Source: Trichoplax adhaerens
Lineage: Eukaryota > Animalia > Placozoa
Length of the DNA stretch: 64,000 bases
NCBI RefSeq assembly: GCF_000150275.1
Contig: NW_002060950.1
Span: forward strand, 3,028,596 to 3,092,595
Reading direction: 5' to 3'
Under the pieces are notes generated by a model. The model made no database searches. It saw only the letters and a list, made by a program, of their open reading frames with translations, and had not been told where the DNA came from. How positions within the stretch are numbered: the stretch's first letter is position 1; each line of letters begins with the position of its first letter. Made by a program: the position numbers and the translations under genes. Positions 142 through 64,000 of this stretch are shown piece by piece.

Positions 142-3100
142 TCCAAATTCGTATGTTTTATACGCCTATGGAATAGAAGACCATGTCAGAGAGGTATTAT
201 ATTATGCTTTAATACATAGCAGAATATATTGAACTGATTGAATGCAACTACTGAAAGACTTTTAGAACGAACAACCAGATAATCTAATGCCGCTTGCTTT
301 TATACTCTCCGCAGCCTTCGCAGCTGCATACTCTAGCATAGAGTCAACAATTAAAATCTGTTATTATGGGCTACTAAATATGTCGCAAGATAAATATAGA
401 AACGATACTACCGCACATCGTATTAAACATGACTAATAGCCTACACTTACAATACATAGTTACTTTACAATTACATATTCTGTATGGTGTATTTTAAAAG
501 TTCTAGTTAGGCCTATAATATAGTAAGTGCTGATAATAATTTTCTGATTTTCGTTAATAAGCACTGCTCATTATGTTTCTTAGGCGTTTCTAAAGAAAGT
601 TCGTGAAGTAAATAGTAATGCTTCCGTTAGCCTGACCAGATATACATGTAGCAGAATGAGCAACTGGAATTTTGCGTACGTAAGAAAAATGGAAATTCGC
701 TACGACATTGCTAAAAAATGACATTCAAAGCATTTAAGCTATATCTATCTCGTAGCTTATACAAAGAAATATTGCGTACATATGAAGACGTAGTTTCATT
801 TCCTCAATATTAAAATCTAACTAAATCCAAAACCATTTTAAATCCTATAATATCAAATATTATAGCTGTATCTGTTTAATGATGTAAGGGATTTCTATAT
901 TAACCGGTAACATGAGTTATTGACTATTCATTTGTTCGTAATCGACATTTAGGGAATTGAGTATACCAACGCAAGCGGCCGCTGTTAACTTGATGGCTGC
1001 TTTTAAAAGTTTAGGACCTGGAAATAATGGCCTAGGATTAAGATTATTTTGGCCTGAAGAAATAGAAAAACAAAGGTTGCAAAAATTAAATAATAGCCAG
1101 CTAAACCTTTTATCTTCATCATATAAAGGTGGTTGCCCCTGCTTTTACAACGCCATAGTCGAAGTTCGGTTAGGGCAATTTCCTGATTTATATCATGTTA
1201 AACGTCTTCTTTATAGGAAATTTACCACTAAAGTTGTAATTTTACTGATTTACTATTTAGAAAGATACAGGCTATGAAGAATATAAACAGTGTTTCATTG
1301 AAACCCATTAAAACTGCTATCATAATATCTGATCTTCCTGCACCATTGCATAAGGTTGATAAAGTCCATCGTAGTGATCTATCTCAAATCATATTATTAG
1401 TTAATAAAGTATTACAAAATTTGAAATATTTTTTTTGTTGATATCGTCTTGATCTCTATCCAACTCATCCGCAGATTGAGCTCTTCCACTTGGTCAATCA
1501 AAGTGGCTTAGTTACTTGCATGGAGATGATGGAATCCAAGAAAGCGTAATAAATGAGTCTATTTAAATGGACTAGTAATATACGTATTTATAAGTCGCTC
1601 TTATAACTACCAAAATAATTTCTATTGTTTGGAAATAAACTAATTATGATTTTAGTTGGAGATAGCATCTTACCGTAGTCATTATAAAGTATTAAGACAA
1701 GTTAATTAGTATGCTTTTAAGTACTTTGGGATTTTTTATAGTTAGTCTGATGAAACCTTGATGTCTTAATTTTTTGACCTTATTAATCATTTGATTTCTA
1801 GATTTGCATCTTTAATTGAATTGCTTATAAATCATTTAGTCTCTAGTTCACGATAATTTCTATATACCATAATATATCATTTTTGAGCAATGGCATGTTT
1901 ATAATTATGATGAAATAAACATATATTATTTCAAGCAAGATATATTATGCTATACATACTTAGTGTTTCTACTTTTCTATTAGGCGCGTAACCTATCTTG
2001 AACAATCTGATGCTATTATCGCTTTTTTGTGCTTGGATAACTTTGAAATCTGTTCTAATCATCGGATTGTTCTGAAATTTGATGATTCTGATTACTCAAA
2101 GCTCTTGAAGGATGAGGTTGATCGACTTCAAAATCTTATTCAAGATCAGGATAGTGGCAGTAGCAGATTGTTGCCCCAGCAAGCTGTGCTAGTAAGTGGA
2201 CAAAGAAAAGATTCCTCTGTCAATCAACTAGAAAGCACGACTTGCGCTGGGCAAGATAAGCAAACTCATTTAATAAATAAAAATCAAGGTAATGGAAACA
2301 TCGATGCTAGCTATAAAATCGAAAAAACGGTAGAAAATAGTACAGAAATGGACAACCCTAGTAGAGCTAGTCAAGGAAATGCTGGAAAAAAAATAGGTAG
2401 GAATAGCTAAAATACGTTTGTTGCTCAAAAGAAAATATGTGCTATTATTTATATAAGCGTAATTTTAATTATTTTGCAATCATGTAAATGATCTTGATGA
2501 ATAATAAATAGAATTGAATTTATACGAGTATATTGTAAGTATAACTCACTATTCAACCTTCTAATGTGCGGGTATCTTTTTTAATGCTACAGTTCAGCAA
2601 GAATATGATTTACCTGCGAATGTTTGTTTCCTTATTCAACAAGCTAATCTAGAACAGAAAATTAAAAATGAAGGCTATAACGTTTCTTTTACGTTTACAA
2701 ATGATGATCATGGATACCGGGTCATTGCACATATGATTGATGGCTCACAAAGTTATGTAATGAAAAAGTTGCTTGCGTACATGGTTATTGTAGAAAGTAC
2801 GGACAAATTACCGGTTAAAATAGGTAGTTTTCTAACTCAACAGGCTGAAATGAGAACTCTTACGAATAAAAAATTACGAGATTACGGATTGGAAGCTGGA
2901 ATCTTCTGCAAAAGAGATTCTCTTTCCATTTTAGCAAGGACCACAGAACTACATGATCAAGTGATTGCAATTTTGAAAAACATTTTTTGTACTAAGTCAA
3001 CAACCATTATCGGTGAAAATCTCCTCATACCACATAATGAAATCGAATTTCTATCAAAAATTCGAGGTGGCATTGCCATATGTAGCCAAGTCTTGTTCGA

Positions 3101-6100
3101 AATAAATAGTACAACTAATGGACACGCAATAACGGTTACAGGTCCAAGTAGCATCGTGGATGATATCGTAGATGATATTCATAAACTAGGAGAAGATTAT
3201 AAAATCGAGAAATTTGTTTTACCCAAATATCCAATTCTTATGACGGAATACCTTCGAGTGCACATGAAAGATATTATTCAAGAATTGGAAAACGAGTTTA
3301 GCTGCAAAATAAACGTCGAGGAAAAGCTGGAAAGTGACACATTCCTTTTAGGAACTACCAAAAATATTACTGTTAAATGTTGCCAAGCGTATAAAACGGT
3401 TGTTTCACAGATGATTCAAGATATTATGCAGAGTATTGCTGTAAAGAGAGAAGAATCGATAAGTAAGTATTCTAGAGTTGGAAGATTTATCATTTCGGAA
3501 ATAAATAAAACAAAATTGGACAAAATACAAAAGGAACTTCAGTGCTTTATTATCGTGGCAGATAATGATGGAAAATTAAGGTTAGAATCTATTCTTAGCA
3601 TCATTTCATAACGAAGTTGTTGTTTCATATATTCTGATGTGTGATGCTATATATCTGCTAACATTGATTAGCGTTATAAAGCAGCAGAGATGTTAAATTC
3701 ATCGATACTTTTCTATAACTAAAGTTACGGTTACATGATACTATCTCATTCATACTATTGGTGTGAAATTGTACTTTCGGTGAACAGTAGGTCCTATTCT
3801 GCAAGTTAGTGCTAATTTTGAGACAGTAGCAAGAGCCAATACTATGCAGCGATACAGTAACAATTTCGAATTGATAAATTTACCAAATAGATCGATTTAG
3901 GTGTACAACCGGAATACAGGTGTAGATCTGGTTTAAAACTAAAGCTACTGTATAGAGTTGCGTATAGTTCTTTCTACAATTTTCATATACGTCAATAACT
4001 ATATGTTAAAGGAGATTGAGACAATATTATTTAAAAGAGGATAACATGTAGTGTAGTACAGAAATTACATAAGTTCACGATTTAAAAATAACCAGAAAAA
4101 CAAGGTATGATACATGCAACGTAATAAGTAACATTTGAACACTATAATACAGTACAATAGTAAATGATTAATTACAAATAACTAATAATGATACTTATAA
4201 TAACAATTAGAGGTATGCACATAACGCAGAATGCAAGTGCTATAAAAGATGACAGTATAATTTTTGCTATGAAAATTGATTACTTGGCCAAAATTTCTAG
4301 ACTATCAGCAGAATCTCTAATTTTCTTTTCTACCTTCTTATTCCCATGGGCGTTAGCAATACTAAACTTAATCAGATAAAGATGCGTAGATCAGCCATGG
4401 ATATTTATAGATCACTTCAGCCACAGACCATGAACGAAACACCTGTAAAGACTGTGACCAATCTTATTAAGCCTACGCCATTTTCGTATAATAACGATAA
4501 TGAAGTTGAAATCAAGAGCATTACTATTAAATTGGTGAAAGGCACTATTGAACGAGAAGGAGCAGCTGTAAGATATCTGTCTACTCTTGTTCTATACTAA
4601 TACTTTAGTCGCTACTGCTGATAATGACCAAATTATGAATTGATTAGGAAACTGAAATGCTAAATTTTATTCTTCATTCATTCATTAATTATAGGCGGAT
4701 GTTATCGTTAACTCTGTGCTGCACGGGAATTACGCCTACGGTAGAATTGCAGTTGCATTAATCCAGGTCGGTGGAACCCCTTATTTATCTGAATGTATTT
4801 TGAAGTTACAAACTTTACAAAGCGACACTATTGGTTGTACAAATGGAGTCTACTTTGGTTGCAAGAAGGTGTATCATATTCCATTCTTATCTTCTGATAG
4901 GTCCTTGAAGGTTAGTACCGAAAAACATTGATGTTGTTTTTTTATTTGTAAGTTGTTGCTGCAAATTATAACTAGCATCAGGTAGTAACAAGTAAATAAA
5001 TGTTATATTATTCGACAATGCAAGCTGAAGCTATCGCTCAATCACATGTTTCTAATTGCTCTTATTTAGTGGCTTAGTGATCGTATTAGCGATTGCCTAA
5101 TTAAAGCTAATACAGAATTTATGAATTCGATATCAATACCAATTATTGGAGCTAGTCAAGCCGAATTAAATATTAATGACATTGCGGCAGAGATGTTAAA
5201 GAAATCCTTTGAATTTGCTCAAAAACAAGTTGGAAGCTTAAAAGAAATCAATTTTATTATTCATCCTACTGACATTAAAAGCTATACAGCTTTTAGTCAA
5301 GCCTTGAAAGCTAGCATAACCTCAATAAATCAGGTGAAGAATTCAAGCCAATTAACTGCATCTGCGAACAAATCAACAAATGATAAGAATGCAAATTGTA
5401 AAAATTATAGCCACCTGTTTTCAGCTATGTGCGAAACTACTGAAACACCCTTTTACATTAATGTTTATCATGGTACTACTTGCGATGCAACCACCGCTGC
5501 TATCTTAGATACGACAGCCTTATGCTCCGATCATAGCACTATAACATCTGATATTATGCAAAGTAAAGATGATGGACATAGTATGAAAACTCTGCAACTT
5601 CTCTCAAGCAAGGAATCGGGTCATAATGTGTACCAGATTTGTCCTTTTGGTTGCTTCGCTGGGCTTAGCACGGTTTTAGCTTATATTAATGCCTACGAAG
5701 ATAAATCTGTAGCTATTCCGTTATTAAGTGTTGAATTAAATTTTGGCCATGTCTACGACTTAATAAAAGCCATAGAAGTATTCATGCTTCATGCTCTTAA
5801 CGATTCAATTAAGATAAGTTCGATTGATTTCGTTATTGGTTACAAAGACCGAGCTTTGGAAATTGCAACTTGGATGGAGCAGAACATTGTTATAAACGCT
5901 GACTTATTGCACTTTGGATGGCAATTGATTAAAAATGTACCCACGAAAAAATTGGGTATAAAATTAGTTTTCGTCGCTCGAGATGAAAGTACAATTGCTA
6001 AAGCTAGGTCGAGAATTGAAGAATCTGCAAGTCTTTGGACATCTCAGAGGATGAATAATGAAGCTTATTTCGCCACTATTGACCAAAATTATTGGTATAA

Positions 6101-7516
6101 AATTGCATTACAGTTTTGGGATGAGTATAATATTATTTTAACACGTCAAAATCAAGGTACAATTGTAGATATACATGGATTGGAAGATGACATTTTCGAC
6201 TCTCTTTCAAGTATACACGAGTTAAGTAAAATCCTTGTTGAGGAGAAAACTCGCTATGAAGTTCAAAGATTGCGGGCAGATAGAGCCATGCACTACCAAA
6301 GCTTTAAGAACTGGCTCTCTGACGGAATTGCAAGGCCCTTTCAAAGATTTTCATCGGGTAAATTATATGTATTACTACTACAAAATAGCATTAATTTTAA
6401 TAAGCTATCCCTTACGGTCCAAAATAGTAATCCGGGTCAGTCATAACTAAAAATCTGTGTAGAAAACTGTGAATCTGATATTTTACAGAAATTAAAAATT
6501 TATGCTATAAAATAAAACTGTTTCTTTATAGACTAGCAGTAATTTCATTCCTGATAAGTAGCTGAATTGAAAACAAATTATTTTGTTTGATAATCTTACA
6601 AAAGATATCGCCATACCTAAGAATTGGGAATATCAAAAGCAGGATCAAATTAGAAATGGACATTTTCGTATATTGAATGTCAAGAATCAACAAGAAATAG
6701 CTGAAATAGCTAATATTCAAGGATTAAATGGGGTTACCATTAGGAAGTTGCAACGAATTCAAAATTGGAATTTATATAGGCGATACCATTTAATGAAAGC
6801 TGATGTAGCTAGAGCAGTTAAGAAGTATAAGCCAGAAGCTCAGGTTGAAAGACGCTTATTTCATGGCACTAAAGGAATAAACTTACCAAGTATAGGTAAA
6901 AATGGTTTCGATCGGGATTTCTCTGGAAAATCTGCAGGTTAGTTAAAGCATGCATAAAAGTGTGCCGAGTTGCATATTATTGCTAAATTAAGCACAATTT
7001 GTAACTATAATACTATATTAGAACTTAGAGTGGAGTAAAACAATCCATCATTAGTATATTTATATGAAATCTGTTTAAATACGAAGATTTATTTTTGAAT
7101 ATATAACATATATAATGACACACTATAGTCAAGTTAAAGTATAATTTGTAATTATAAAATAATATTACAAGTAAGAGTAGGGTAAGAGAATTCATCGTTA
7201 GCATTACAATTATCAAATTTATTTCTTGGTATAACTCTCTTATTTTATTTATTTTGCAGGTTCAGCGCTTGGTACTGGCACATATTTTGCTACAGATGCG
7301 AGAATGTCATTACAATATGGTAGCAGTCTTATCTTAGCACGTGTTCTAACAGGAATATATGGTGCTGCAGCTAGTAGCAACCAACCAAACTTATCTAGCA
7401 TTCCTGGAAGCAAAGGAGATCGAATTCATTCTGTTGTTAATGACGTTACTAATCCTTCTGTATTTGTAATTTCTAATGATAACTCTGCTTATCCAGAATA
7501 CATTATCCATATATAA
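142..7516 (+). CDS. PARP14: G1: PARP14-like macro-PARP mono-ADP-ribosyltransferase (2 RRM, KH-like array, 2 macrodomains, KH-like, ART; no WWE). First micro-exon lies upstream of the window. Symbol is family-level.
   Basis: Manually spliced GT-AG exons, frame-consistent: 142-193, 584-675, 953-1168, 1261-1354, 1475-1545, 1984-2396, 2593-3580, 4357-4567, 4695-4910, 5070-6357, 6605-6937, 7260-7516 (~1410 aa). Motifs: RRM1 VLYAYGI...WNFA; RRM2 AIIISDLP...ELFHLVNQSG...VTYLEQSDAIIAFLCLDNFEI; macro IKLVKGTIE|ADVIVNSV...KVYHIPF...SISIPIIG; ART LQRIQNWNLYRRY...RRLFHGT...GFDRDFSG|SALGTGTYFA...LARVLTG...PSVFVI...AYPEYII. Confidence 0.88.
6605..7516 (+). other. G1 PARP catalytic (ART) domain, H-Y-V mono-ART signature
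   Basis: HG at 6862-6867, GTYFA in the last exon, Val at 7460-7462 in PSVFVI; two exons 6605-6937 and 7260-7516. Confidence 0.9.
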
Positions 7517-10604: not shown

Positions 10605-13600
10605 ATGGGTCAATTATTCTGCTTAGCATGTTTTCAAGCACCCAAACCTTCTACGTCTTACACCTATCAGACATACGTGAAGGAAAGGTGCCGCAAGGCA
10701 GCAGCTAAATCGAATACAAATGCTGACGATAAAGAGAATTCGAGAACAGCTGAAGGCTTACCGAGTAGCTCTAATAACTATGTCCAACAAGGATCAAGGA
10801 TTAACAATTTGAATAATGACCGTAATAATTATGGGAGCGTAGCAAATCACAGAGGAAATTCAACTGTAAATGAACCTCAAAGTAATTCAGCTGGCTTTAC
10901 ATCTGATAAGTTACCAACACAAAGTAAACAAGAAAATAAAGCACCTATTGGCATACTCAAAAATTGGAAGGATGGTCAATATTCGTCTGCTAGAGTTGAA
11001 ATTAATTCTAAAAGTCACCAAAATAATTCAGCAGGCCTCCCGGCTGGTAAGTTGCCAGTACAGAGTCAAGGAAATGATAAAGCAGCCAATAGCACACCAA
11101 ATGATGGGAATGATGATCGATATCAATTTTCTAGAGCTGATGCTAGATCTAAAATTCACGAAATTAATACGAGATTGTCTTCAAAACGGTCATTACTATC
11201 GTCGAAAACTTCTTTGGAAGAATTACTTGATAGCAATATCAAACCTTTGAAAGCCTCCACTACTCAAAGTAATGGAACGGCACAAGATTCAAACAGCAAA
11301 AATAAAGTTCCGTTGATTCATAACTCATCGTTCTCCTATACCGCAGCAGATCGTGAAAAAGGTCAAGATACCAACAAAAATAAAGCTGGTAAGTTAGGTG
11401 TACCTGTATCTGCACCCTCCATTAGCCGGAATTTATCGGGAAAAAGTAATGATAGCTATATCCAAAACTTGGGAACATCATCGACTGGTATTCGTGTACA
11501 CAACAGTGCAAAAGATCCAATAGCAAATGGAAGTGCAGTGAACAATTTAGCTGCTCCTACAGCAAAAACCCAAGTTAGACAGAATTTGCAACAGGATAGC
11601 AATAGCCAAGATCCAAAGCTGAATACAGTCAAAAATTCTAAAATCGTTGATCGTAAGTTAGTTAATACACCCTCCGTTATAATAGAAAAACATAAGGCAG
11701 CCAATAAGCAAAGCAATGTAACTAACCATTCTGTGTCAACGCCATCTCTTACAGGTGAATTAAATAGTAATGACAGAGTCAGTCAAGACGGAAATTCCAA
11801 GGCTTCTGCTCGATCGACAAAGCACAAGACAACATTATCATTTGAGCAAGAATTGTTACAGAAAATAAATAATGATATCATCGACGAAGGCAACGTGTGC
11901 CAAGATGGAAGCATCGAAAATTTCAATCCAACTGTTGCTAAAAATAGTGGAGCAATTAATAAAAATCACAAAGATCAATCTCTAACAAATGATACTGCTA
12001 CTAAAAATGTTAAAAGTGGAGAAACCCGTCATCATATGGTTGATACAACATCAAATATAGTGGTGGAAAAGTATGATGCAGGTAAGTCAGACAGTTACCA
12101 AAATGAGGATTATAAAGGCAAAGCAACATTAAAATTGGCGTCTTCTTCTTGTCATTTACTCTCTTAAGGTGTAAATAAAACAACAGAGGATACTACTAGA
12201 GGATCAATATTTACCATGACTCCTTCCTTAATGTTGCTCTTTCAGCAACTTGGCTCGCAACATCAATTGGTTCAAATTGCCAACAGGAAAGAAATACAAG
12301 ATCATCAGGAGCTTTTTGCAAATATCAAAGACAGTCAAGATGGCATATCGCCATCGCTGTCTACATTTCTTTGCCAGTACCCACAGCTTGTAAAGGACAT
12401 GAACACCAAATTTAGAAATCGAAAAATTAAAGCAGGTATCCATTATAATAAGAAGACAATCTCCATAGTAGCTATCAGCAAACAAGAATATGATAAAGCA
12501 GTGACGATTCTTAACACGGATATCCTTACCAACACTCATCAAATATCATATACCAAAGATTTGCTTTGGCACTGGATCGCAATATATGATGTATTAACAA
12601 AGAAATTAGCTTCTCATCTTGGCGTATTGATCCAATGTTGGATGAATACCAAAGAGAAAGTTGTGACTGTTGAAGTGGTTGGCAGCAGTAATACTTTGGA
12701 TAATGTGATTACGAAAGTCCAGCAATCTCTCAATGACTTTGAAGCAAAAATAGCTTTTACTCTTTATGATGATGAATTTTTCATCCAAGAATTGCCACAA
12801 GTAAAAGCTCAGTACTTGAAACAGCATTATAAAGAGGAAATAGAGGATCAGTATTGTTGCCAATTGCAGTTTCACTCGATAGAAGATTTGGATAGCGATT
12901 TGAAATATCAAGTGATCATTAAATATCCTCATGAGCGTATAACAACCGAGATTAGGCAAATTAAAGAGAAAATTTCTTCTATTCCTATTGCCATTAAAAA
13001 ATTTTCGTACGATGGTAGCCAATTATCCAGAATAGCGCGATTCATCATTCATGGTCGAAGACACAGGAAGATTAAGGAAATTATGGCGAATTTAAAATGT
13101 TCATTTACAATATCAGATGTTGCTGTTGAAAGGTAGCTATAGTAATAAAAGTTAAAAGAATTGGAAGTTACTAGGAGAATTTGAAATAGGTACTAGAAAG
13201 AGCTGCCAATTTTAATTCACTTAATTTCGTCTTCTACAGTAAAGTCAATGTGAAGAAGAAGCAAGAAAAAACATCGAATGAAAATTTAGCTGCTTCAAAG
13301 AATAGAAGAAGTAAAAGGCAAATATCGTCATCGGCAAGTACAGACTACGGTGACGACCAAATTTATGTCTTGGGATTGTGTATGAAACTTATAAGAGGAA
13401 GAATTGAAGAACAAGGTAGAAAGGTACGTATAATGATTTCAGCTTGTGACAGTGGTTGTGTGTTACAGTAAGCTAAAAGTATTACCAGAATGATCATAAA
13501 TCTCCGTAGCATTAAATTTTGCCTAATGCGATAAAGCCATTCAGAATTTTCTTCCATGGTCTCTTATTTAGACTGATGTTATTGTCAATGCTGTTGATGT

Positions 13601-16289
13601 GTGCGACTTCGAAGTAGGAGCAATCGCTAGAGCATTATATCAGGCTGGTGGACGAAATTATAGAAGAGAATGTGACAATCTGAGCCAGTATCTTGATGAA
13701 GATGAAATTGGCTGTACTGATGGATATCGTTTAAGATGTAAGAAAGTCTATCACGTTCCATTCTTAAGTTCGCCGCGAACATTAACGGTAAGTTAATCGG
13801 CAACTACTGAAAGCAGTTCAATAATTAATGGGATAAGGTTGCAATCAGCTGACACCGCTGTTTTTTCCCCTATACGTTCTGTTTTTGTAGTGGTTAAATG
13901 ACAAAATTTACGAATGTCTAGATAAAGCGAATCGTGAATCGATGAAAGCTATTTCTATACCGACCATTGGGACTGGCAGTACTGGATTTTCCTATGATAC
14001 TATTGCGAAAGAAATGATCGATGTAGCAATCGAATTTGCTAAGAACAGTGGTCGCAGAAATTTAAAAGTAGTGCGATTTGTTGTCTTTGAAAATGATGTA
14101 GAAGCGTATTATAGCTATAGTAAAATATTTAAGCGAATTAATAGCCATTCTGATGGAACATCAAGGCTATCTGACTTGACCAAATGCGATGGAGTAGGAC
14201 TGGTAGAACGCCTAACAAACGCTACAAAAACTGTTATAGATATGAAAGAAAATCCACTGGAAATTCTATTTTCTGCCGTATCTACAGATTCCTCTCGTTT
14301 TCGTCTCAATTTCTATCATGGTAGTATTTACGCTGCTGAAACATCAGCTATACTTAATCCAACAAAAGTCTGTTCAAGCCATTTACAGCAGGGAAAGCTA
14401 TCAGAGCGATTAGATCGGAATTGGTCTCGAATGCACTGGAGTTGGACTTTAAGTAGTAGCCAAGAAACGGTAGCTGGAAGTAGCAGGACTATTTATACTT
14501 GTTGTCCATACGATATGATAGACGATTTTCAATCTTTGCTCAATCATATCAATGGCAATGGCGAGAGTTCTCTTACATGTCCATTAGCAAGTACAGAAAT
14601 TAAGGAAGAAGATATCTGCAGTCTATTTACTGCTATAGCTAGTTTTCTCAAAGATCGGTCCAAGATCAACAGTCCACTTTCACGTCTTGATTTTATAACG
14701 GGGAATAACGAACTAGCTCATGAAATAGCTTGTTGGGCGCAAAGGCAAATTACGGTTAAACGTAGAGATGGCATTGCAAAATCGATTAATTGGCATATTA
14801 GTCAATCCTATTCTTACCATAGATATGGCAAGAGTATTGATATCATTGCTGGTAGTAACGATATTATAGATCAAGTTGAGAAAAATTTAGCAGATAGTGC
14901 ACCGTGTTGGATAAGCAAAGAAGTCCAGGAAGAAGATCTGATTGATAACTTCCAGGATATCCAATGCTTAAAACTAATTAATGAATTATGGTGTCAGTTT
15001 GGTACATTAACAGTTTGCAATCCCAATAGCAACAAAATGACAATTTACGGCTATGAAGATGATGTATTTCAAGCTACTAATAGGATTCAAAAGTTTGCTA
15101 GAGAGAGAGATTGTCAAGTTATGGTAAAAGAGTGGGCTAACGACTCCTTAGAAATTGCTAAATGGAGCGTTGAAGTCGAGCAAACTACTCACACTTTTTC
15201 TCCTGAAATGAACTATGAAATTGAAAAAGGCTACCAAATTTTTATTCAAAACAAATACGGGTCCACTCATAAATTTGACGATAAAATCATCAATTACGAC
15301 GACATGGCAATCCAAATGAACAATTTGTCATTTACAATAATGCGAAAATCGATTCATCACGGTAGGTTAAACGTTATTTTCAAGAAATTTTTCTTAAAAT
15401 CTTTGCCCTTGTTAAGACATACGGTACTTTACTTCCACTATATCCAGTGTCTTTCTTATATTATTCTCATCAGTCAGTGAGCAAGGTCAAGACAGTAGTA
15501 TGAAGAGATTTTAGTCTTGTTGATAATGAATTCGATGATTATCTAATTTATAGATGATTTGCCAAGTCATTGGACACGTATTGATAATGATGACGAGAAT
15601 ATGGATCAAAATCTTCTAGTGGATGTATGCTATGGTGAAGAGTTTAATGAAATCGATCGGATTGTAAATTCATCACATAGTTGTTTTCACCTTATGAGAT
15701 TGCAAAGAGTTCAGAATAAGAACCTTTATAAACGCTATCAGCTGTGCAAGAAAGAAGTGACTGAATCAGTACAAAAGCATCGTTCCAGGTTTCCAGTTGA
15801 GAGAAGATTATTTTATGGTACCGACCCTTCAAGTATAAATCGTATTTATAAAACGGGATTTGACAGAGACTTTGATGCATCTGCAGGTAGGATATTTATC
15901 ATTCACTCAACATGGAATGAGTGTAAGGGCAGGCATATTGTCTTAAGTTGTCTGTTTTATAAGTTCAATTTCTATTGATGGATATCCAATTCCTTGCCCA
16001 ACTTTATATTCTTAATCTATTCCTACTAGGGGCTGAATACGGAATTGGAACTTATCTTCATGAAAATATTCTTAGCGCCTATTCAAGTAAGAATACTTTG
16101 CTTCTAGTGAGGGCTATAACGGGTATATATGGATTACATTCAGGAAAAGGAAAGATAAATTTAGGAGTTATCCCTGGTAGTGAGGAAAGAATTCATTCCG
16201 CGGTTAATAATGTTCGTTATCCTAGTACTTTTGTTATCTTGAATGACAACGCTGCTTATCCAGAATATATTCTACATATTCGAGGCTAA
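10605..16289 (+). CDS. PARP14: G2: PARP14-like macro-PARP (~490 aa disordered N-terminus, KH-like array, 2 macrodomains, KH-like, WWE, ART with Y-Y-T site; probably catalytically impaired). Symbol is family-level.
   Basis: Exons 10605-12081, 12169-13132, 13240-13423, 13572-13787, 13891-15361, 15554-15886, 16030-16289 (1634 aa, frame-consistent). The TAA at 12165 falls inside an 87-nt intron (G|GTAAGT...TTAAG|GT). Macro TDVIVNAV...AISIPTIGTG; WWE KWSVEVEQTTHTFSPEMNYEIEKGY; ART RRLFYGT...GTYLH...PSTFVI...AYPEYIL. Confidence 0.87.
10884..11165 (+). repeat. Coding tandem repeat, 2 x 47 aa (141 nt) in the G2 N-terminus
   Basis: NSAGFTSDKLPTQSKQENKA... at 10884 and NSAGLPAGKLPVQSQGNDKA... at 11025. 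Confidence 0.8.
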
Positions 16290-16395: not shown

Positions 16396-17038
16396 AAACG
16401 AATTCTTTGGAGAGATTTGTTCCTTACTGATGCAAGCTAGAACAAGAACTGTTAAGAAATACTTGTAGTTAAACGACTAGTATAATAATCTTCTTCCTCA
16501 TTTTTAATATAGTGAAAGACCATTTTTCCTTTCCTACTTTATTTTGGTAGTCTCTAGCTATACAGCCATCACATTAGAATCTATTCTTACATTAAGAAAG
16601 GTTACAATGATGCATTTGCAGGGATCTCGATTTTTTTTGGGGGGGGGGGCAAAATAATCCAAATCAAGTATGTCTTTGCTCAAGCTTGGTTAACTAGAAT
16701 AGTATTAGCCCTTTATTTCTTAGTAATTATTTCGTTGGTATAGCTACGTACTGATTAAGGTGGCGGTAGACAAAGTAAGTTATATTGTTTCAAAGTGATA
16801 TAAAATTATTAAATCCATATATCATTATTACGGATTTATCTATGGATAAAAGTTAAAATTATTATATAAGTAAAGTTACTTGTGTTTGATTTTAAAATAT
16901 AAAAATGTGTAGCATCAATTAATTGAGAATTGTCTTGTATCGTAGCTATTTTGCTGTAGCGCAGCCCCAAATAGCTTAAAAAATTAGAGTTATATATTTC
17001 TACAAGAATAGATTGGATTGTACGCTAGATTGTCAAGT

Positions 17039-48200: not shown

Positions 48201-51200
48201 AATTATCAAGAATATTTTGTGTGATTCTTTTTAAAGTGTACGTTCTCAATCTCGTGGTACGCCTGATTTATAATAGGATAACCAAGGAGAATTCTAAACT
48301 TCGTGCTCCAGCGTGGAAGAAAGTAAATCGAGGACTACGGGTAACGTGCCCTTCATTGAAGTATAATAATACATCTTTTTCACAACAGGCATCTTCATTC
48401 ACGTACCTGCCTAGCAAAATGTCCTCGATGCTATTGCTTAATAAACTCTCACCGTCAACCTTTTCAAGCTGGTCGTGTAACGTACCAATTATAGATGATA
48501 ATCAAAAGATTGATTTCAATGGTAAAGTTATTACTGTTTTGAAAAGGCCACTACAAGCTATAAGTAATAATGTAAGTATCGACAAGATTTCACGAAGATT
48601 TATACGCTGAATGGTTGAATTGCGGCTAGGATAGATTCTATAGAATAAACTAAATTTAAATCTTTATATTTCTCTCTTCGGTATCTTGTACATTAGTTCG
48701 ATGTCATCGTAAATTCTATAATGTTATGGAATTATAGCGCTGGACAAATTGCATCAGCTTTATATCAATCTGGTGGCGCTGCATACCGACTTGAATGTCA
48801 GAGGAAATTATATACATTAAGTACGACAAGTATAGGTTGCACAAGTGGCGTTCACTTCGGATGTCAATACGTCTACCATATTCCATTTCTAAGTTCTTCT
48901 AGGCACTTATCGGTAAGCTGATTCATTTGCATAAGTAAGTGATCTTAATTAAACTTCAATCCTGATACTGAAACTTTTCATGGTAGTGGTTAAAGCCTAA
49001 AATTGGCGAATGCTTACGAAAAGCTAGTAAACAGTCTATGCAATCCATGGCAATACCAGCGATTGGTGCTGGCCACGTTGGTATTAAAGCGCAAGATCTT
49101 GCTAGAGAAATGATATCCACCACTTGTAAATATTTGTTAAAAAATGCTGATACAAGTTTGAATGTCATTGCTTTTGTCATTTTGGATCAAGACATCTACG
49201 ATGCGTACACGAAATCGATCGATGCTGCTCAGATTGAGCTGAATTCATATTGCCAAGAGAGTAACTTCTCTACGAATCAACTAGATAATGGATTGGTTGA
49301 TCAGATAACTAAATGCAAGAAAATTCCGGGTAAAATTGAAGAGGAAAAGCTCGATACACTATTAACAGTAACCTCAGAAAGCAATGCCAAATTATCTTGC
49401 AATTTCTGTTTTGGAGTAATGCATGCTGTACAAACATCAGCAGTCATTAATACAACTCATATCTGCCATCTTCATCAATCAGAAGATCATTTATCAGCAA
49501 GACTAGATTCCACTGTCAAAAACCATTGCTTAGAGAGTATTCATGTGGATAAAAGCACACAAAGTGACTGTAGCATTTTTAAAGTTTGTCCATATGGCCT
49601 GATTGATGATTTCGGCTCTTTGTTAGCTTGCGTCAATGCTAATGAAAACACGTCGATATCATGTCCTCTTGCCAGTACAGAAATCACCGAAGAAGATATC
49701 AAATTACTCATTCAAGCTATCTATCTATTCTTAGATAGTCATAAGAAATCAGGAATTAGTCTTCAACGTATTGATTTTATCACTGGAAATAGAGAATTAG
49801 CATATGAGATTGCGAGTTGGGCACAGCACCAGTTCGAGAATGCACACAAATCTTATTCAGATTATACAATCGCATGGCAGATAACTCGGCCATTTTCCTA
49901 CAACAATTTTGGCAAAAATGTTACCATTGTAGCTAGTCGGTATGAAATTATTGAGCAAATTGAATCACTATTAGCAAGTTACGCTCCAAGTTGGACATGT
50001 GTTGTTTTCGCTGAAGAAGATATGCTTGGATATGATGAAGAAACTTGGCATGCACTAATTCAAGATTGGTGGTGCCACCACAGTACCTTAATGATCAGAA
50101 ATACAAATACAAAACAACTGCAAATCTACGGCTATAAAAATGACATCTTCACAACCTATAGCAATTTTCAAAAATCATCCAGCCTGAAAACATATCAGTC
50201 AGCTATGGAGGAGAACAGAAAAGAACTTTTGGAAACTGTTCAATGGAATGTCAATATCAAACAAGCTGTGCATCAATTTGATCTTGTAATGAATTATCAG
50301 CTTGAAATAGATTATCAAGCATATTTGAACGATAAAACAAAATCAAACGTTATTTTAGATGGTAAATCAATCGATTTTATCAGGATGGCAATTACAGTGG
50401 ATACTGGAATGTCTTATCCAATCTGGCGCAAGTTTGCATTGGAAGGTTAGTCAATCCGCCTACTCTTAAAATAAGCCTTGATTAACTATTCGCTTTAACG
50501 TAGCACGTAAATGTCCATATGCAATCATTTAGTGAAGACACGAGTTTGTCTCAAAACTTTTCAATCTGCTATGCACTCATTATCAAGGCACAAAATAGAA
50601 AACAGCTTCACATATTCATAGAAACTACGATCATACTGCTATTTAACTTTATACGTAAACGAATTGGAAAAATTGGGTATATCTCCTATCACTTTTAATT
50701 TACTTATAGTAGGTTAAATAGTAAGTTCAAAATAATGATCACTTTCTAGATTTTGGTTGTGCAAAGGTCTCAATCTTGCTGCTGGAAGAATTTACGATAC
50801 TTCGAAATCATTTAAACATGATATTGAAATAAAAAAAAAAATTTACAATGGCTAAGATTGCAAAAAAATGCGTAGTTTAGGATGGCATTCTATAGTCTCC
50901 CTTTGATCGTAACATGTAATTACTCATATGTTACAATGTCGAGACCTCGCATATTGTTTATACCGTATCAATAGTTTTAATTACTTAATGAGTAATAGTC
51001 AAGCTACTAAATAGCGTGTAATATTAGATTATCTTTCTTCCAGCATTTCATGAAGTTTAAACATACTTTGATTTTGCGAATCAAAAATTGCATTTAGATT
51101 GTTTTAAGATTTTGGCAGATTTCTTTTAGTTAAGATCAGTTAAAATTTCCCTTAATTTTGATTTTGCGAATCATGACCTTGAGTTTGACTAATTTAAAAT

Positions 51201-52107
51201 CTTGTACATTATTAATGCAACCTGTTAGTGTGCACCGATGTCAAAGTCGAATATATCGTTGCAGATTAATTAATTAATGCAGTTCTTATTAAATCCAACA
51301 GACCCTACAGATAGTTTAAAATCTGGCTTACGAATGTTTCAATTCTGTTATATTAAATTATCTAACTTTCCAAATGAATTTGATATATCAATAGATTCAT
51401 TACCAGCAAGTTGGCAATCAGCTGAAGCAGATACCCAGAAAGATGAACTGAAATTAATAGTGGAAGTGAGGAATCAGGCAGAAATACAAGAAATTTCCGA
51501 ACTAGTGCGAGCTAAAGGAATAGATCTAATAAAATTACAGCGTATCCAAAATAGGAATCTGTACCGGAGGTATCAGCTACAGAAAGCAGAAGTAACACAA
51601 GACGTACAGCAATATCAGCCAGGAACTGTAATTGAAAGGCGATTATTCCACCGGACGAATGAGAATAATGTGAATAGTATTTGCAAATCCGGCTTTGATC
51701 GAGATTACTCCGGTAAATCTCATGGTAGGTTCAGCTTAAAATAAGAGTTTTTATCAATGTTAGCATTGATAGATGAGTAGAGCACACTCATTTATGTAGG
51801 CTCAAATTAGAAACAATTTACTAAATTTTGTCCAATATATCTACGATTAGGATCCGCATTAGGAAATGGAACTTACTTCGCCACTGAACCATCCACTACC
51901 GTCGGCTATGGGCGTACATTAATTCTGGCTCGCGTACTTACCGGCATCTGCAATACTTCTGGTAATGTCCGTAATTTGCAATATATTCCAGGCAGTCAGA
52001 ATAAAAGAATTCATTCTGTAGTGAATAGCTTGTTAAATCCTACAGTATTTGTAATATTTAACGACAACGCTGCATATCCGGAATATATATTACATGTTCG
52101 GCAATAA
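45232..52107 (+). CDS. PARP14: G5: PARP14-like macro-PARP (~600 aa charged disordered N-terminus, KH-like array, 2 macrodomains, KH-like, WWE, ART with HGT>HRT). Symbol is family-level.
   Basis: Exons 45232-45247, 45348-48075, 48277-48571, 48697-48912, 48987-50445, 51395-51724, 51851-52107 (1766 aa, frame-consistent). Macro FDVIVNSI...SMAIPAIGAG; WWE QWNVNIKQAVHQFDLVMNYQLEIDY; ART RRLFHRT...GNGTYFA...LARVLTG...PTVFVIFNDNAAYPEYIL. The last exon is absent from the ORF track. Confidence 0.87.
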
Positions 52108-55100: not shown

Positions 55101-55111
55101 CATTTTATACC

Positions 55112-56357: not shown

Positions 56358-58428
56358 TCTCACAAAAGAGCTTTGCAGCAAGATAAGGGAATTTACGATC
56401 AATAAGTGAATTGCTTGAATCACGTATCAAGGAGCGATATATACACAATCAGGAACACTTTTACTCTACTAGCAGACAACACAAAGGCTTAGACGCCTCT
56501 TATTTTACGTTAAACACTAGGTTTCACAATTAACTTCATTACACGATATATTGCGTTTACATACTGTACTCCTCCTTAATAGTTCATGAGTCATAGTTAG
56601 TATGGTTAACTTTGGAATCATTGGCAGTTTTATATGTTAATTTAAGCTACTTCTCCCTAATGCAGACAACAGTATTTACGAACATAGACATCTGATGACT
56701 AATACAGAATAGTCAGATTACGATATGTCCTATCACGGGACATTTCCATGATAATTTGCAATCTACCATAAGTAAGCTACAATCATAATGATTTGAACTG
56801 TAAGTAGATAATTCGCATTGCCTAATATAACTATTAATTTCAGTATATGTATATATGCCACTGTCATAAAAAGCCAGTGCTATATTAAAATACATTATAT
56901 CCAAATTAGAAATTAACTAAATAAGAATAGGCTAACAAAATTATCTTAACATAGATATTTTTACTCTAATACAGTATATAAGACTGTCATAATTGGATGT
57001 AGTACAATGTAAGAAATAAGCGATATCGTAGCTCTCGAATCATATCTTTCTGAAGTGCTATATGCGGTCAGTGTTGCAACATTGCTTAGATTAAAGTAAA
57101 AATTTAAAAGCTACGCTTTAATTATACCCGGTAAAATATAGCTACATCTTTACGGGGCATGCGTATTGGTTCATTTTGCCCAGCAAGGTTATTAAAGTAT
57201 TGATATTGAACATGAACTCAGCAATATAATACTACTGTAATTGTTTGATACATTAAATAAAGCTTGGGCTCATAGTCTAATCTTTTGAGGGAAGTATAGT
57301 TATCCTGTACCCTTTTGATGATGAAAAATTGTCATTAATTGAGTGATACTATTGGTGGATGACGAAAAGGATAGGTCTGCCCAGTGGCCTTATAAGTACA
57401 TCTAATTTCTAAGTAATAGTTTACATTTACTTTGTTGCAAATCGTAATTTATAACAGAAGTAAGGGAAGGAAGATAAAGCCTTTGCTAACTCTTGCAATA
57501 TGAGGAACCATTATTTGATTACCATATTGCAACCGTAAGATTGATTCTCTGATCTACCCTGTAGCAGATCAAAATTTGATTCAGAAGCTTAGAAATAGCA
57601 TAATTTTTTAATTTAATCATTTGTTAATACTTGGAGTTACTAGAATATCATGTATGCTAATGTGACATTCATTAATTAATGCATCATCAATATTATAATT
57701 TTGTTGTGTGATGAATCATATGTTGACACCTAGCTACTAATTAACTAATATTAAATGTCATAGAAAGTGTGTTGTGATTCTGGCTATAATAAGTATGTAG
57801 ACTGGGTTATTAATTAATTACTGTTTTTGCACCAACGAAGTTGGTGAGGATATATAAAGTCTCAAAGTTCTTAATTGAGAGTTAGTTACGTTAGTCGATG
57901 ACAGCTGGTTATCAGTTGCTAGTCGTAATTGTAAGTTGTGTGTTCAATCGGACATTTTAATAAAATAGCTTCTAGAATAAAGTTTTGATCCTTAACGTGA
58001 GTAATCTATCGTCTAAGACTCGAATCTAAGTTTGGTTGATTAAAGAGTGCTTAGAGTTAGTTGCTTAGATAGTTAAGTCTACTTTAGAGGAAAGAATCCC
58101 GTTTAATTCTTGTGTTACAATCTCGGTTGTGACAGCTAATACTACTTGCTTTGCTAAAAATTGCTGTATTTCATCATATTGATAGAACCTAGTTAATTGC
58201 AATACCGATCAAATTTTTAGCAACTATTCAAAATTAATTGCCAGTAACTTATGAGTACTGTTATATATATACGAGCATACGCTTTCTCAGTATGGTTAGA
58301 ATTATCTTAAAATTACAGAGAAACTCAATACTTTTGTTTATTATCTAATATAGGTTTGAATTATCGATCCTTTCTATATAGGATAGAGTTTTGCATATTT
58401 TCAAGCTTTCCTTAGTATCCCCTAAAAG

Positions 58429-61400
58429 ATGGCAACGACAAATTCTCTCAGGTCTGCTCTTTCTATATTACAATATTATAGCTAAAAAAAAGCAAATCGT
58501 AATTTTTTAATGCGTTAAACAGCTAGTTAAAAACTTTTAATTATCTAATCCATTCAGAAGCATTTACAGTATTGCTTTAAAATATCTTAGAATAAGTATC
58601 ATCATTTCATAACTTTAACAGATAACCAAATACTAATTTCAGTGCATAACAAAAGCGATTAAATGGTTCTTGATTCACTGTCAATAAATTCAAGTTGCAC
58701 AAGCATCTAAGATTTAGGCATTTTATCCTCAATTATAGTTTTATTGAAATAATATTAATGCATTTAGTTCTGTATTAATTAATCTTAATAGCTAAAGAAT
58801 TATTAATCAGAAGTCCATCTATATTTTAACAGAATATTTACTTCAAATTAATACTACCATGAATTATCTACATAATCAAGCGTAATAATTTTATGATCTG
58901 ATTGATAAATAAGTTATAGTCTTTAATAGCATGGTAAAAATTCACTGTAAACTCTATGACTTAGAAAATGATTTAGTTTGACAGAATCCAGTAGATTATT
59001 AATTACCAGCAGCAGAAGTGTCTTTGTTTATTTTTGATTTGCAAGACATTAGAAAGTTTAATAAACTGTACATTATAATTCGTAACGTTATTAAAGTATT
59101 GGTTAATTTAAGAAGACCTTAAATCGAAATATATGCTGTACCTCTTCATGCTACCTTTCGTTGGAGGCATCGAAGATAATTGTAGTGAAAATTGTAGAAA
59201 CCATCATTTGTATCACCTAAATTTTATTAGTGATTGGCTTTTTATATGTCATCACTAAAATTAAATAGCTACCAAAAATTACCGTCCTATTCCAATTTTA
59301 ATATGAACTTATTTATAATTTATTAGCATTCATCAATTAAATAGTAATTCGTACGAAATATGGGTTTGTGAGATGGAAGAGATCGCCTTAAAGGTAGAAA
59401 AATTTACCGTATGTGATATAGACGAGTAAAGACTACTTATTTGCTGATTGTTAAGCTAGATTAGATGGAAGTCGATTTCCTTATTTTCTAAGGATTTATG
59501 TCGACAATTTAAGACTTACGATAATCCTACATGATATGAAACTGTAATAATTTTCAGTTTATTATAGCAATTATATGCTTTGAAAGTATGGTAATGCTGC
59601 AAAAATATCAATTAGCTCTAGCCGTTTTGTAAAAAGCACTTTTGCAAACAATGAATTAATAAATCATCAACATTAAATTCTATGTTTAATTTGATATTTT
59701 AATATCTACTTGGTCCCTTCATTCTAGATGAAAGACTAAGTTTTTACTATAGATCACTATTAGCTGATGAAACTTGTAGACAAATACAGTCTGAAGTAGT
59801 AATCTTAAAACTTGTGTATGCATTCATTTATTTTGCAATGTATTTTAAAATAGAAATTTTTGATTAAACTATGGATAATCGAAAATTAAAAATATACTCT
59901 AAAAATAAACCTGCTATTTCATTATGAATATAAATACATAAAATCTCTTGACATTATGGTTAGAAATTTATAGGACAAGTAAACACCCTAACGTCCTCAC
60001 GTAGTAGTATCAAATTCGGAAAATATGTTCATTATAAAAAAAAAGAACGAAATTTTGCGTAAGTAGTTAAAAATAACATTGAGGCTTTGTAAGGTTAAAA
60101 TTTTATCAGATTCATATGATAAATGTATAGGAACAGGGAAAAAATATATGATAAATTTGATGCAAAGTTACTTTTTGGTTTGTTAATGGCTATAGCATAT
60201 CATCAGACATAATTGTTAGTATCATTTCTTGTTATTGAGGCTTAATGAAGCCTATAATGCAGAAATCACAAGCATTAGTTAATTGCTTGACTCCGCTAAA
60301 TACATTAAATCATGCCAGCAATCGCTTTCTATTCAAACTAATTCTTCATCATGCGTTGACACAGAATCCTTCAGGTCTTCTCCGAAAATGATGCTGTGAC
60401 GGTAATGGCAAATCTTTATGGCAGAAGGCTTGAAGGAAGTCGATTATCTTTCCGAGTTTATTGGTCTTTGGCAATGCCGTTGGGCTTGCGCCAACGATTA
60501 AATGAAATGCTATTTCAAAAGAGAGAGAAAGTAAAGGCTTGTAAAGGCAATTTTTATGATAGCTTGTTAGAAAGCAGGTGAATAATGCTTATTGGTATTG
60601 ACATTAATATCTGAAGAAAAATAGTACCGATATAAGAAAGCTTTTTACGTTTTCGTAAAGAATTGTTAAATAAGTATGGAAATTAGATTCTTACTGATTG
60701 ATTGACAGATAGAAATGGTCATTCAATTTCTATAAGAGCAAAAAATTAGAACCGTGTCTGGATATGTATATGTATATATATATGGAGAAAAGTCTAGCTT
60801 TATCTAACTATAATATCTTTTCCATTATTTTTTTAGAAAAATCCTCTACCACAGGAAATTACGGCATTTTACAGGCGAATCTAAACCAATCACCATTCAT
60901 GTATCACGATTGCCAATATCGATGAGCATAGTAAGCCCTTTCGTCAATTAACAATAATATACTAGAATAATATCATCGTGTTTGATACCTACTAAGTGTG
61001 TAAGGGTAAACTGAGCTCTCTAAAAGATTAGTTTTCGTTATTTATAGGTGGAATGTATTCACTGCTTTAGTCAAGCTGGAGAAATTATTGATTGCAAAAA
61101 TGGCTCTTCTGATTGCATGTAAATATAGATAAATGGGTTTTTAATAGATCGGTCGTCTGATAGTACTAGGAAGTTAGATAAACTTACGAATATCAGAGAC
61201 TAATTATAATATGTCTACGGTCGAACTGTACACTTAATTTCATCAGTGCCTAAGTTGATATACAGCAAATAAATCTATTCTTACTTAACAACTTGCGCTC
61301 AATTTTAAATTATTTTAAATTAAATAGTAGATCAAAACCTTTGCTATACTTGCCGTACAAAAAATATCAGCAAAATACTGTCATTATCCTAAATTTCGTA

Positions 61401-64000
61401 ACATTTATCGCTATTTTAATATACAGAAGCCTTACGTATAAAGATGACAAGAGCGGCTTAATTGCCTTACTTTGCTTTCGATATTTCAACATTGAACCTG
61501 GCAAACAAATTAAGGCATTTCTAGCAGACGAATGTAAAGATTCTTTAATTTTTAAGAAGTTAATATCAATGATAATAAAAAAAAAGGAATTGAAAGTAAA
61601 TATGAACAAAATTAACCGTATTCTTTTAATATTCACTATGTCATTTACTTCAGATTTGGAGTTAACATTAAGGATTTTTAAAATTAAACATAGCTTTTCA
61701 TATAGCCTTAAAATTAGTCATTTACTGATAGCGTAAGGGCTTTCTGATGTATAGCTAATGGAATATTTAATTTCGCTAGGATTCTCCCAAAAGTGAAGCC
61801 CAACCTGAAAATGCCATGGAAATCTTTGAATCTGAAGGTACAGCAGCTAATATAAAAAGTAGAATTTATTTCTGTTCCAGGGGGCAATAAAAGTAGTAAA
61901 TAATGAAAAGGTGCAATTAACTTTTCATATTATTTTTTAGCGCTTTTAATCATAATTAATGAAGAATACTACAAAAATTAACTTCGATTAATATTGAGAG
62001 GCTAAGAATAATTTTCTCCAAGATCTGTAGTCATTGAAAACTATTCTATAAGAAGGAGACCTGATTTCATAAATAAAACTTCGTTTAATTAAGAAATTAA
62101 CGCCTTTTTAACGAAATCGTAACCTTTAATCATGGAATTTCGTATCTAAGGCCTATAATATTGCAATCAGCTAACGTTACAATGATTCATAATAGAATGA
62201 CATCCTCATCCATTACCTATCGTACTTCTTATTGTAAAAATTTAATATTCGGATTCAATAGAGTAGATCTTTACCTGGTTAACAAGCATTACAAATTTAA
62301 ATTTTGCGACGAAAAAAATACAACTATCATAGAAAACTAAACGCTAATAGCCTACAGTAAAACTTGCCCTTGACGATGTTTACCTACAGTATGACTCTAA
62401 ATAATGACGATCTCCTAGTATCAGGAGGAACGGTAGTTACTAGTCTCCTCAGACATAACTAAACTCAAACTTATTTAAAAACCAGTTGATTTATAGCCAA
62501 TTTACATAAAAATTTATTATAGGTAATTGAATAAAATTATAAAACTATTGATTTATCTAATAAGAAGGTATAAAATCATAGATGATAGTGTTTCCAACAA
62601 ATACCTACATACGTTATTTGATGAAATTAGATCAGCATTAGTTAGTGAAAGTCACTTCTAAAGAGTAAGACATATTAGTAAAGAAACGCCTGTAAATTGT
62701 CTATTATTACTTAAGACAAGACATAATTATGCTTCTTTAACTTTATACTATGATTTAATAAGCCAATTTAAGTTTAGCGATCGTATTAACGTATCAAAAA
62801 GCTATCGAAATTTCTATTCATATTAGCTTTCAGAAATTACAGTACCGCTATCATATTATTAATCTTAATCAAAGGCTTGGCTTATCCTCTAGTTATTAAT
62901 ATTCAAAGTATACCAAACTCATAGAATTCTATGTTATCTCGGCATTCCGTAAATTTCGCTTAACTTTTACCCTTTTCCATTATAGACTTTAGCCATAATA
63001 TTTCTGACATGAGTGATTCAGACGATTTTTCAACCGCATCCCAACATAGCCAGAAAGAATTTAAAAGTGACACGGAAAGCATTTGCGATCAAAGGGAATT
63101 ATGGGGGGAAATAGATGGAGAATTAGAAGAGTTTCCTATAGCTCATCATGTCAAATTCTTATTGCAACTCATTGAGCTAGATAAGAAATTACGTCTAAAA
63201 GGCATTCCTGTTTATTTTAAATTTTTTCAACGATATGGTTATCCTATCATAGCCATTAAAATGAATGAACATTATAAACTAATTATTATGCAAGAATTAA
63301 CAGCACTTATTGGGATTGAGATTAGTAGTGCTGGCTTGACAGAATCGATGACGAGCTTTTTATCCAAATATGACGACAATCAACATCATCTAAATAGAAA
63401 ATTAATGGAGCAATCTATTCAAGCAGGAATTTATAAGAATCAACAAGATTTCATTTCCATCGTTGCTCTCAATCACTCAGAATATTCAAGAGCAATTTCT
63501 TATTTACACTGTGAAATTTCAACCCAATCGATTAAAATTATTGGTGATAGTTTTAATTTAGTGTTAGATGGTAAGGTCCTGAAGCCCGATTTCCTTCTTA
63601 ATTTATCGGATCAGCACAAAGTTTGTCTGCAAACCGAAATTGATACCCAATCCGCTCATTGTAATATTATTGCGATTGGCTTGAAGGATTCTGTGAAACA
63701 AGTTTTAGTTGCTATCAACAAGAGCATTCTAGACTATAAAATGATCCAATTTTCGATTGACCAAAAAATCGAAACTGGATCATCTATTTGGTTAGAATTT
63801 CTTCGACATCATTTTCATCGTATTGAGGAAGAATATCACTGTTACGTACATTGCAAAAATGTTACAAATGACACCCCCGCTAATCAAGATGGTCGAGAAG
63901 GAGATATTATTATTCAATGCTATCCTCATGATCAGCAACTTATTTATTTCCAAATTAAAAAGTTATTTCGTTATTCGTTCGTCCACGAGCAATCAGGCAT
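58429..64000 (+). CDS. G6: PARP14-like family member, RRM-RRM-KH-like; 3' part lies beyond the window
   Basis: Exons 58429-58451 (tentative), 59345-59393, 59964-60058, 60365-60577, 60837-60930, 61048-61118, 61427-61595, 61780-61837, 62986->64000. Clear RRM: NFAILQVFSENDAVTVMANLYGRRLEGSRLSFRVY. The last exon (not in the ORF track because it has no stop) reads VKFLLQLIELDKKL...MTSFLSKY...IQAGIY...ISIVALN, homologous to the KH exon of G1-G5. Confidence 0.82.

Follow-up and report, generated by a model that had tools for sequence, protein, structure and literature searches.

A 64,000-nt stretch of the Trichoplax adhaerens genome carries six PARP14-like genes (G1, G2, G3, G4, G5 and G7) and one relic of the same family. 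This stretch, which we call the window, was placed at G000:C1407:3028596-3092595 by mapping to the 105.6-Mb, 1414-contig genome. It is AT-rich (~32% G+C), and all its family genes lie on the + strand. The window most likely covers the 3' part of a tandem expansion of PARP14-like genes that is specific to placozoans and whose copies diversified by birth and death and include retained non-catalytic members. An earlier note on the same DNA had described it as an innate-immunity system that appears to split the writing and reading of ADP-ribose between paralogues, a reading that we weigh below.

Gene content and extent of the array

Repeated exon sets were recognised by all-versus-all blastp among the + strand open frames, and gene models were built with a purpose-written protein-to-genome spliced aligner, itself checked on the proteins of Trichoplax sp. 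H2 (hereafter H2). The spliced models were joined locally for analyses of length, open reading frame (ORF), ratio of nonsynonymous to synonymous divergence (dN/dS), alignment of the ADP-ribosyltransferase (ART) domain, and phylogeny; database and fold searches were run exon by exon. The family members in the window are as follows:

G1, 142-7516, + strand: 12 modelled exons encoding ~1424 aa inside the window, ORF without stops (spliced alignment to P0153/P0154).
G2, 10605-16289, + strand: 8 exons, 1600 aa, no stops (spliced alignment of the H2 protein P0001, RDD38020).
Relic, 23834-24293, + strand: one or two N-terminal family exons (spliced-aligner scores of 54-61 over 16400-26900).
G3, 26996-33428, + strand: ART-less gene of at least 965 aa, no stops (spliced alignment to the RNA-based G4 protein).
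G4, 36727-42672, + strand: ART-less gene, 12 exons, 981 aa, stop codon at 42585-42587 (RNA-based model).
G5, 45232-52107, + strand: 8 exons, 1753 aa (spliced alignment of P0151); TRIADDRAFT_58773 is a partial model of it.
G7, 5' half, 59967-64000, + strand: the gene runs on to window-equivalent position ~69830, with a full model of ~1410 aa and no stops.

The earlier note had counted seven co-oriented loci. The blastp comparison bears out the shared orientation, but the count reduces to six genes and the short relic. We sought a seventh full paralogue at 16.4-26.9 kb and at 52.2-58.4 kb and rejected it: the first interval yielded the relic alone, and the spliced aligner found no family sequence in the second. 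The relic matches the 216-nt N-terminal exon of G3 by blastp and may include a second exon, and a 96-aa gene is annotated there in H2.

Exon sizes and phases are common among the paralogues in the spliced models, as had been proposed. The 92-, 216- and 71-nt N-terminal exons are common to G1, G3, G4 and G7, and a 216-nt phase-0 macro exon occurs in all six window genes. G1, G2, G5 and G7 also have a common 1357-1471-nt exon, followed by ART exon 1 (333 nt in G1 and G2, 336 in G7 and 423 in G5) and ART exon 2 (~251-257 nt). The first coding exon of G1 appears to lie upstream of the window. Two features offered by the aligner were rejected. The first, a 69-nt exon in G1 (6489-6557), is low-complexity intron, and the reading phase closes without an extra exon. 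The second, an intron in G3 (29918-30081), is 162 nt of in-frame 54-nt tandem repeat; the G3 exon at 29629-30164 holds 2.3 copies of this repeat, with an 18-aa unit, at 29957-30080, which explains its 162-nt surplus over the 374-nt G4 counterpart.

The whole genome was then searched with the ART exon and exon A of G1. This census counted 14 loci with an ART and 16 with exon A. Contig C1407 carries thirteen of the genes between 2,910,691 and 3,097,504 (~190 kb), 12 of them co-oriented, and the relatives outside this array are two on C1394 and one on C1410. The seven loci and three ARTs that the earlier note took as the size of the system are thus a window-edge effect. A further macro-1-type exon, with the near-canonical loop IGTGNLRL, lies ~580 kb upstream of the array on the - strand (C1407:2331762-2331974); it was not picked up by the ART or exon-A genome searches.

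The genes are already annotated publicly, since database searches matched them in both H2 and T. adhaerens. Protein P0002 is TRIADDRAFT_58773 of T. adhaerens, 100% identical to window positions 49047-50444, and the H2 orthologues of G2 and G5 carry the names PARP9 (RDD38020) and PARP14 (RDD38030), respectively. H2 annotates G7 as a 1456-aa protein with Macro and PARP. The nearest non-placozoan proteins are annotated as PARP14-like.

Domain architecture and motif states

Pfam detects one Macro and one PARP domain per protein, full-length proteins included, with Macro scores of 38-48 bits in full-length H2 and T. adhaerens proteins; on single exons it detects only fragments of these two domains. 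It finds no RRM, KH or WWE in any large or small window exon or in the full-length paralogues. KH, macro and WWE folds were recovered by structure prediction. An AlphaFold2 model of G1 exon A (2592-3569), built with 15 paralogous rows, has a predicted local distance difference test score (pLDDT) of 87 and shows four consecutive beta-alpha-alpha-beta-beta-alpha units, for which Foldseek returned GLD-3, IMP3 KH1-2, PCBP2 KH1-2 and FBP KH3-4 at probabilities of 0.99-1.0. The model of the 487-aa G5 exon (pLDDT 81) starts with the C-terminal third of macro-1 and a long helix. Its residues 119-300 form a complete second macro fold (Z 12-13.8 to PARP9 macrodomains MD1 and MD2, macroH2A, and PARP14 MD3 and MD2), residues 335-402 a type-I KH (Z ~8.5), and residues 417-487 a WWE (Z 9.2 to TRIP12, 8.4 to HUWE1 with a root-mean-square deviation of 1.4 A, and 8.1 to RNF146).

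A profile of this long macro-to-WWE exon, made from three paralogues, was run against 1.8 billion protein representatives; its positions 304-490 match what follows the final macrodomain in PARP14-like proteins from other animals. By PDB sequence search, macro-1 is nearest to PARP9 MD2, macroH2A1.1 and PARP14 MD2, which places it in the reader class, and the best matches of the ART exons are the ART domains of PARP12/14/15. The sequence matches and the recovered folds uphold the identification of these genes as PARP14-like macro-PARPs of the clade 3B/3C type.

The KH-WWE module stands directly before the ART. G2, in which the WWE-like segment begins at 15157, and G7, whose full model has a WWE, agree with G5 by alignment. 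The architecture of G5 runs from a long unique N-terminus through a KH array, macro-1, macro-2, KH and WWE (from 50238) to the ART; that of G1 comprises the N-terminal exons, four KH domains, macro-1, macro-2, KH, an eroded WWE and the ART. The WWE had been called absent from G1, but the homologous segment is retained, though with two deletions and without the near-invariant Trp or the final strand. G3 has the N-terminal exons, four KH domains and macro-1 and then stops at the same place as G4. No ART homology was found downstream of G3 or G4, so their description as ART-less holds.

Two side observations concern these architectures. In the cryptic macro-2 (window 49464-49589, residues 160-201 of the G5 exon, and the equivalent stretches of the other paralogues), 11 paralogues show near-invariance at Cys160, His163 and Cys201, and G1, G2 and G5 all have His180; this Cys/His set may be a candidate metal site. 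G2 starts with MGQLFCLAC (10605-10631), a possible N-myristoylation/palmitoylation motif.

Positions of the ART triad were placed by alignment to the human PARP14 and PARP12 structures. The pockets of the ART-bearing window genes are:

G1 ART, + strand: HG at 6850-6870, Y..S..Y at 7271-7318 and V at 7451-7474; pocket H-G, Y, S, Y, V (RRLFHGT / GTYF / NPSV-FVIS).
G2 ART, + strand: YG at 15802-15822, second segment at 16041-16088 and Thr at 16218-16241; pocket Y-G, Y, A, S, T (RRLFYGT).
G5 ART, + strand: HR at 51637-51657, Y..T..Y at 51862-51909 and V at 52036-52059; pocket H-R, Y, T, Y, V (RRLFHRT).
G7 ART, + strand, 4.6 kb past the window: H-G/Y/(Ala)/Y/I.

The ADP-ribose loops of macro-1 in the window are:

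G1, 5139-5168, + strand: PIIGASQAEL, degenerate.
G2, 13960-13989, + strand: PTIGTGSTGF, canonical.
G3, 33231-33260, + strand: PMYGSPVFCS, degenerate.
G4, 42387-42416, + strand: PMYGSPEFST, degenerate.
G5, 49056-49085, + strand: PAIGAGHVGI, canonical.

All the motif strings that the earlier note had quoted for G1, G2 and G5 are present, and so are the features that it drew from them: an intact ART and a degenerate loop in G1, and altered pockets with a kept WWE and canonical loops in G2 (YG..T) and G5 (HR). The corresponding G7 loop, IGIDENHL, is degenerate.

Among 76 PARP14-like ARTs of other animals, the pocket residues are conserved in 75 (H), 73 (G), 76 (Y), 72 (S) and 70 (second Y) sequences. 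Measured against this conservation, the G2 pocket is strongly degraded: Ala replaces the pocket Ser and Ser replaces the second Tyr (both within 16041-16088) in addition to its Y-G and Thr, and G5 departs at the 96%-conserved Gly. With G to R and S to T as its sole changes, the G5 pocket is of uncertain status. The neighbour at C1407:3011k has lost the NAD+-binding His or Tyr. Ten of the 14 Trichoplax ARTs, G7 among them, retain His-Gly, Tyr and an aliphatic third residue, although two of these ten (G7 and 2911k) have Ala for the pocket Ser. An intact triad and a GxGxxG loop of canonical form occur together in at least four copies (C1407:2999k, 2911k, C1394:854k and 867k). In the paralogue at ~2972k, the triad residues are intact and ART exon 1 is interrupted by ~970 bp (C1407:2971410-2972637), which is either an extra intron or an insertion.

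Ancestry, transcription and selection

When 90 ART domains were placed in a maximum-likelihood tree, the 14 from Trichoplax all fell together in a single clade, with a support of 100 in the Shimodaira-Hasegawa-like approximate likelihood ratio test and a stem length of 1.0. The other 76 sequences include PARP14-like proteins from starfish, hemichordates, amphioxus, a bivalve and a brachiopod. The single clade supports a lineage-specific expansion, in agreement with the independent origin that the earlier note had proposed. Because the Trichoplax ARTs stand outside the 76 ARTs of other animals, they are co-orthologues at best, and one-to-one orthology with vertebrate PARP14 fails. Within the clade, G2, 3011k, G5 and G7 form a subclade in which G2 is sister to 3011k.

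Transcription was examined for one gene, G4. Its RNA contigs from runs X5, X8 and X11, which belong to three studies, are joined at nine GT..AG junctions, and the DNA-like run X1 is unspliced. The mRNA ends at 42668-42672, ~85 nt past the stop codon and after the macro exon, and the ORF is 981 aa, precisely as long as the H2-annotated protein, in which Macro is the sole domain. G3 and G4 share 49% aa identity, can be aligned in exons only and end at the same position. With dN of 0.37 and dS of 0.91, their dN/dS is ~0.40, which reflects purifying selection. Thus, the truncation is old, and both copies have been maintained since. That the ART-less and dead-pocket copies are intact is borne out by their open ORFs, the expression of G4, and a G3/G4 ratio that is not near 1.

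Across introns as well as exons, H2 and the window share 99.2-99.3% DNA identity. Ratios of nonsynonymous to synonymous differences per site (pN/pS) between the two strains are 0.58 for G1, 0.78 for G2, 0.35 for G4 and 0.56 for G5. The pooled comparison, with 66 nonsynonymous and 32 synonymous differences, rejects neutrality (p = 0.004); G4 alone is individually significant. Over 52.5 kb, 24 of the 25 insertions or deletions (indels) that distinguish the two strains are non-coding, and none falls in the coding sequence of G2, G4 or G5. The sole coding indel is a 1-bp insertion in H2 (ACAACT -> ACAAACT) at window position 3115, in exon A of G1 (2593-3580), which breaks the frame. Whether a real lesion or an assembly error, this insertion probably explains the 1397-aa H2 annotation.

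One further feature of the window stands outside the gene family:

Dispersed repeat, 57661-58135, strand not given: 474 bp.

This repeat lies just 5' of G7, is missing at the same site in H2 and has at least 40 genomic copies, many of them 99-100% identical. These features suggest a small mobile element with recent activity.

Interpretation and relation to known systems

If the window is part of a placozoan birth-and-death expansion, the ancestral unit would have had N-terminal modules of RNA-binding type, followed by four KH-like domains, then a macrodomain of the reader class and a cryptic one, and last a KH, a WWE and a mono-ART with an H-Y-[I/L/M/V] triad. Birth-and-death evolution would then have led to three kinds of copy. 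Judged from their sequences, G1, G7 and most upstream neighbours would be full-length and probably active, and G2, C1407:3011k and possibly G5 and the 3024k neighbour would have degraded NAD+ pockets; the third kind would be the old pair, G3 and G4, shortened after macro-1. The full-length copies may be autonomous mono-ARTs, guided to their targets by KH domains, N-terminal modules and macrodomain; the degraded and the truncated ones may serve in binding or regulation without catalysis, like vertebrate PARP9 and ZAP/PARP13. By analogy, a conflict-driven (antiviral or antimicrobial) origin is plausible.

Several observations weigh against this interpretation. Taken singly, the pN/pS values of G1, G2 and G5 are indistinguishable from neutrality at 0.7-0.8% divergence. 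The N-terminal exons have no Pfam or PDB sequence match that would identify RRMs; a language-model feature search with residues 1-320 of the paralogue P0154 returned RRM_PARP14 clusters at 0.78-0.82, which is a weak lead. G1 and G7, both with an intact ART, are without a canonical macro loop, and a GxGxxG loop occurs in 4/4 ART-degraded copies compared with 4/10 ART-intact ones. The last of these is a weak trend (one-sided Fisher ~0.07) and is phylogenetically non-independent, as G2, 3011k and G5 belong to one clade.

One alternative extends the expansion to a convergent PARP14/PARP9/DTX3L logic, in which G3, G4, G2, 3011k and perhaps G5 would be partners, regulators or decoys of competent neighbours, acting via KH/WWE surfaces in a conflict-driven ADP-ribosylation defence cluster. 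We consider this unlikely. DTX3L is an RRM-KH protein that partners PARP9 and PARP14, and G3 and G4 recall it in being ART-less, KH-dominated members of a macro-PARP cluster. Unlike DTX3L, however, they retain a macrodomain and are without the RING-DTC module.

The earlier note had proposed one cooperating system, in which G1 writes, G2, G5, G3 and G4 read or sense, and the subunits may assemble through KH domains. The contrast between G1, with its canonical ART, degenerate macro loop and eroded WWE, and G2 and G5, in which these states are reversed, speaks for such a system, as do the loop trend described above, the conservation of the non-catalytic copies and the expression of G4. It also has a vertebrate precedent: the KH8-WWE-ART portion of PARP14 binds KH2-3 of DTX3L, and PARP9 plus DTX3L resemble a split PARP14 (PMC13224862). 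Nevertheless, we find the proposal distinctly improbable. G1 appeared to be the one writer because the window frame cut off the ART of G7 and the upstream neighbours; intact triads occur in G7, which has H-G/Y/I and an intact WWE, and in at least eight other copies, including most upstream neighbours. Nor is a division of writing and reading between paralogues supported, given the four or more unsplit copies in which the triad is intact and the loop canonical. Degenerate loops (YGSP..) mark the ART-less G3 and G4, and in the G4 motif AQAIVN (42027-42044) Gln replaces the adenine-contacting Asp, so neither can be called a reader on sequence grounds. A reader role for the WWE is likewise undercut, as no binding of poly(ADP-ribose) by the PARP14 WWE was detected (PMC13224862). 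In addition, the loop trend on which the proposal draws follows phylogeny, the supposed sole writer carries the frameshifting insertion in the H2 assembly, and no Deltex-type RING-DTC gene was found near the array, the only genomic DTC match being on another contig, C1399.

The possibility that G2, G3, G4 and G5 are decaying duplicates without a function of their own could draw on their degraded catalytic or ligand motifs, on the individually non-significant ratios of G2 and G5 and on the relic at 23.8 kb, which shows that copies do die in the array, but we rejected it as very improbable on the strength of ORFs that run uninterrupted for 965-1753 codons and keep a conserved splice structure, the restriction of 24 indels to non-coding DNA, the spliced, polyexonic G4 RNA of three studies, and the G3/G4 dN/dS at 49% identity.

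The preferred reading, a placozoan expansion by birth and death, can be compared with known macro-PARPs. Published PARP14 consists of three RRMs, eight KH domains, three macrodomains, a WWE and an ART (PMC13224862). Like vertebrate PARP14, the Trichoplax proteins have a KH array and tandem macrodomains, followed by KH, WWE and, at the C-terminus, a mono-ART whose triad is H-Y-aliphatic. They differ from vertebrate PARP14 in having two macrodomains (one of them cryptic to Pfam) rather than three, and their macro-1 resembles MD2, PARP9 MD2 and macroH2A, not MD1, which belongs to the hydrolase class. Their N-termini also vary, with possibly RRM-like exons in G1, G3, G4 and G7, an MG start for G2 and, for G5, a long exon unique to it, and the placozoan copies form a clade of their own, none of them a one-to-one orthologue.

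The pseudo-enzymes PARP9 and ZAP/PARP13 have the triads Q-Y-T and Y-Y-V, respectively, and G2 (Y-Y-T) and 3011k resemble them in the loss of the NAD+-binding His or Tyr. G2 and 3011k also resemble PARP9 in that they derive from duplication of a PARP14-like gene and are still intact (PMC2964712, PMC13224862). Unlike PARP9 and ZAP, however, they arose independently within the placozoan clade and have no adjacent Deltex gene, and their inactivity is deduced from motifs.

Duplication of PARP14-like genes in placozoans is itself already published. Citarelli et al. (2010) assigned the macro-PARPs of Trichoplax to clade 3B (PMC2964712), Perina et al. (2014) found PARP14-like genes to be frequently duplicated in placozoan and sponge and to occur in tandem in amphioxus (PMC4245714), and a 2026 review reported the same duplications and linked them to antiviral conflict (PMC13224862). 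Our literature search found no paper that names these loci and none on an immune role for them in Trichoplax. The array resembles the amphioxus, sponge and placozoan clusters in its repeated local duplication and varying domain content (PMC4245714); beyond that account, it resolves into 13 genes, among which are an ART-less pair with one member, G4, seen to be transcribed, and a subclade whose pockets have decayed; a second macrodomain, cryptic to Pfam, is a further addition. Since the duplication is published and the genes are annotated, what is new here is gene-level detail and not the kind of system.

In one of the simplest animals, then, a PARP14-like gene has been duplicated recurrently and independently of vertebrates, and, as in vertebrates, some of the duplicates drop catalytic residues or the whole ART yet stay retained. 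With at least 16 macro-PARPs, Trichoplax offers a compact natural set for questions of mono-ADP-ribosylation, ADP-ribose reading and KH/WWE assembly.

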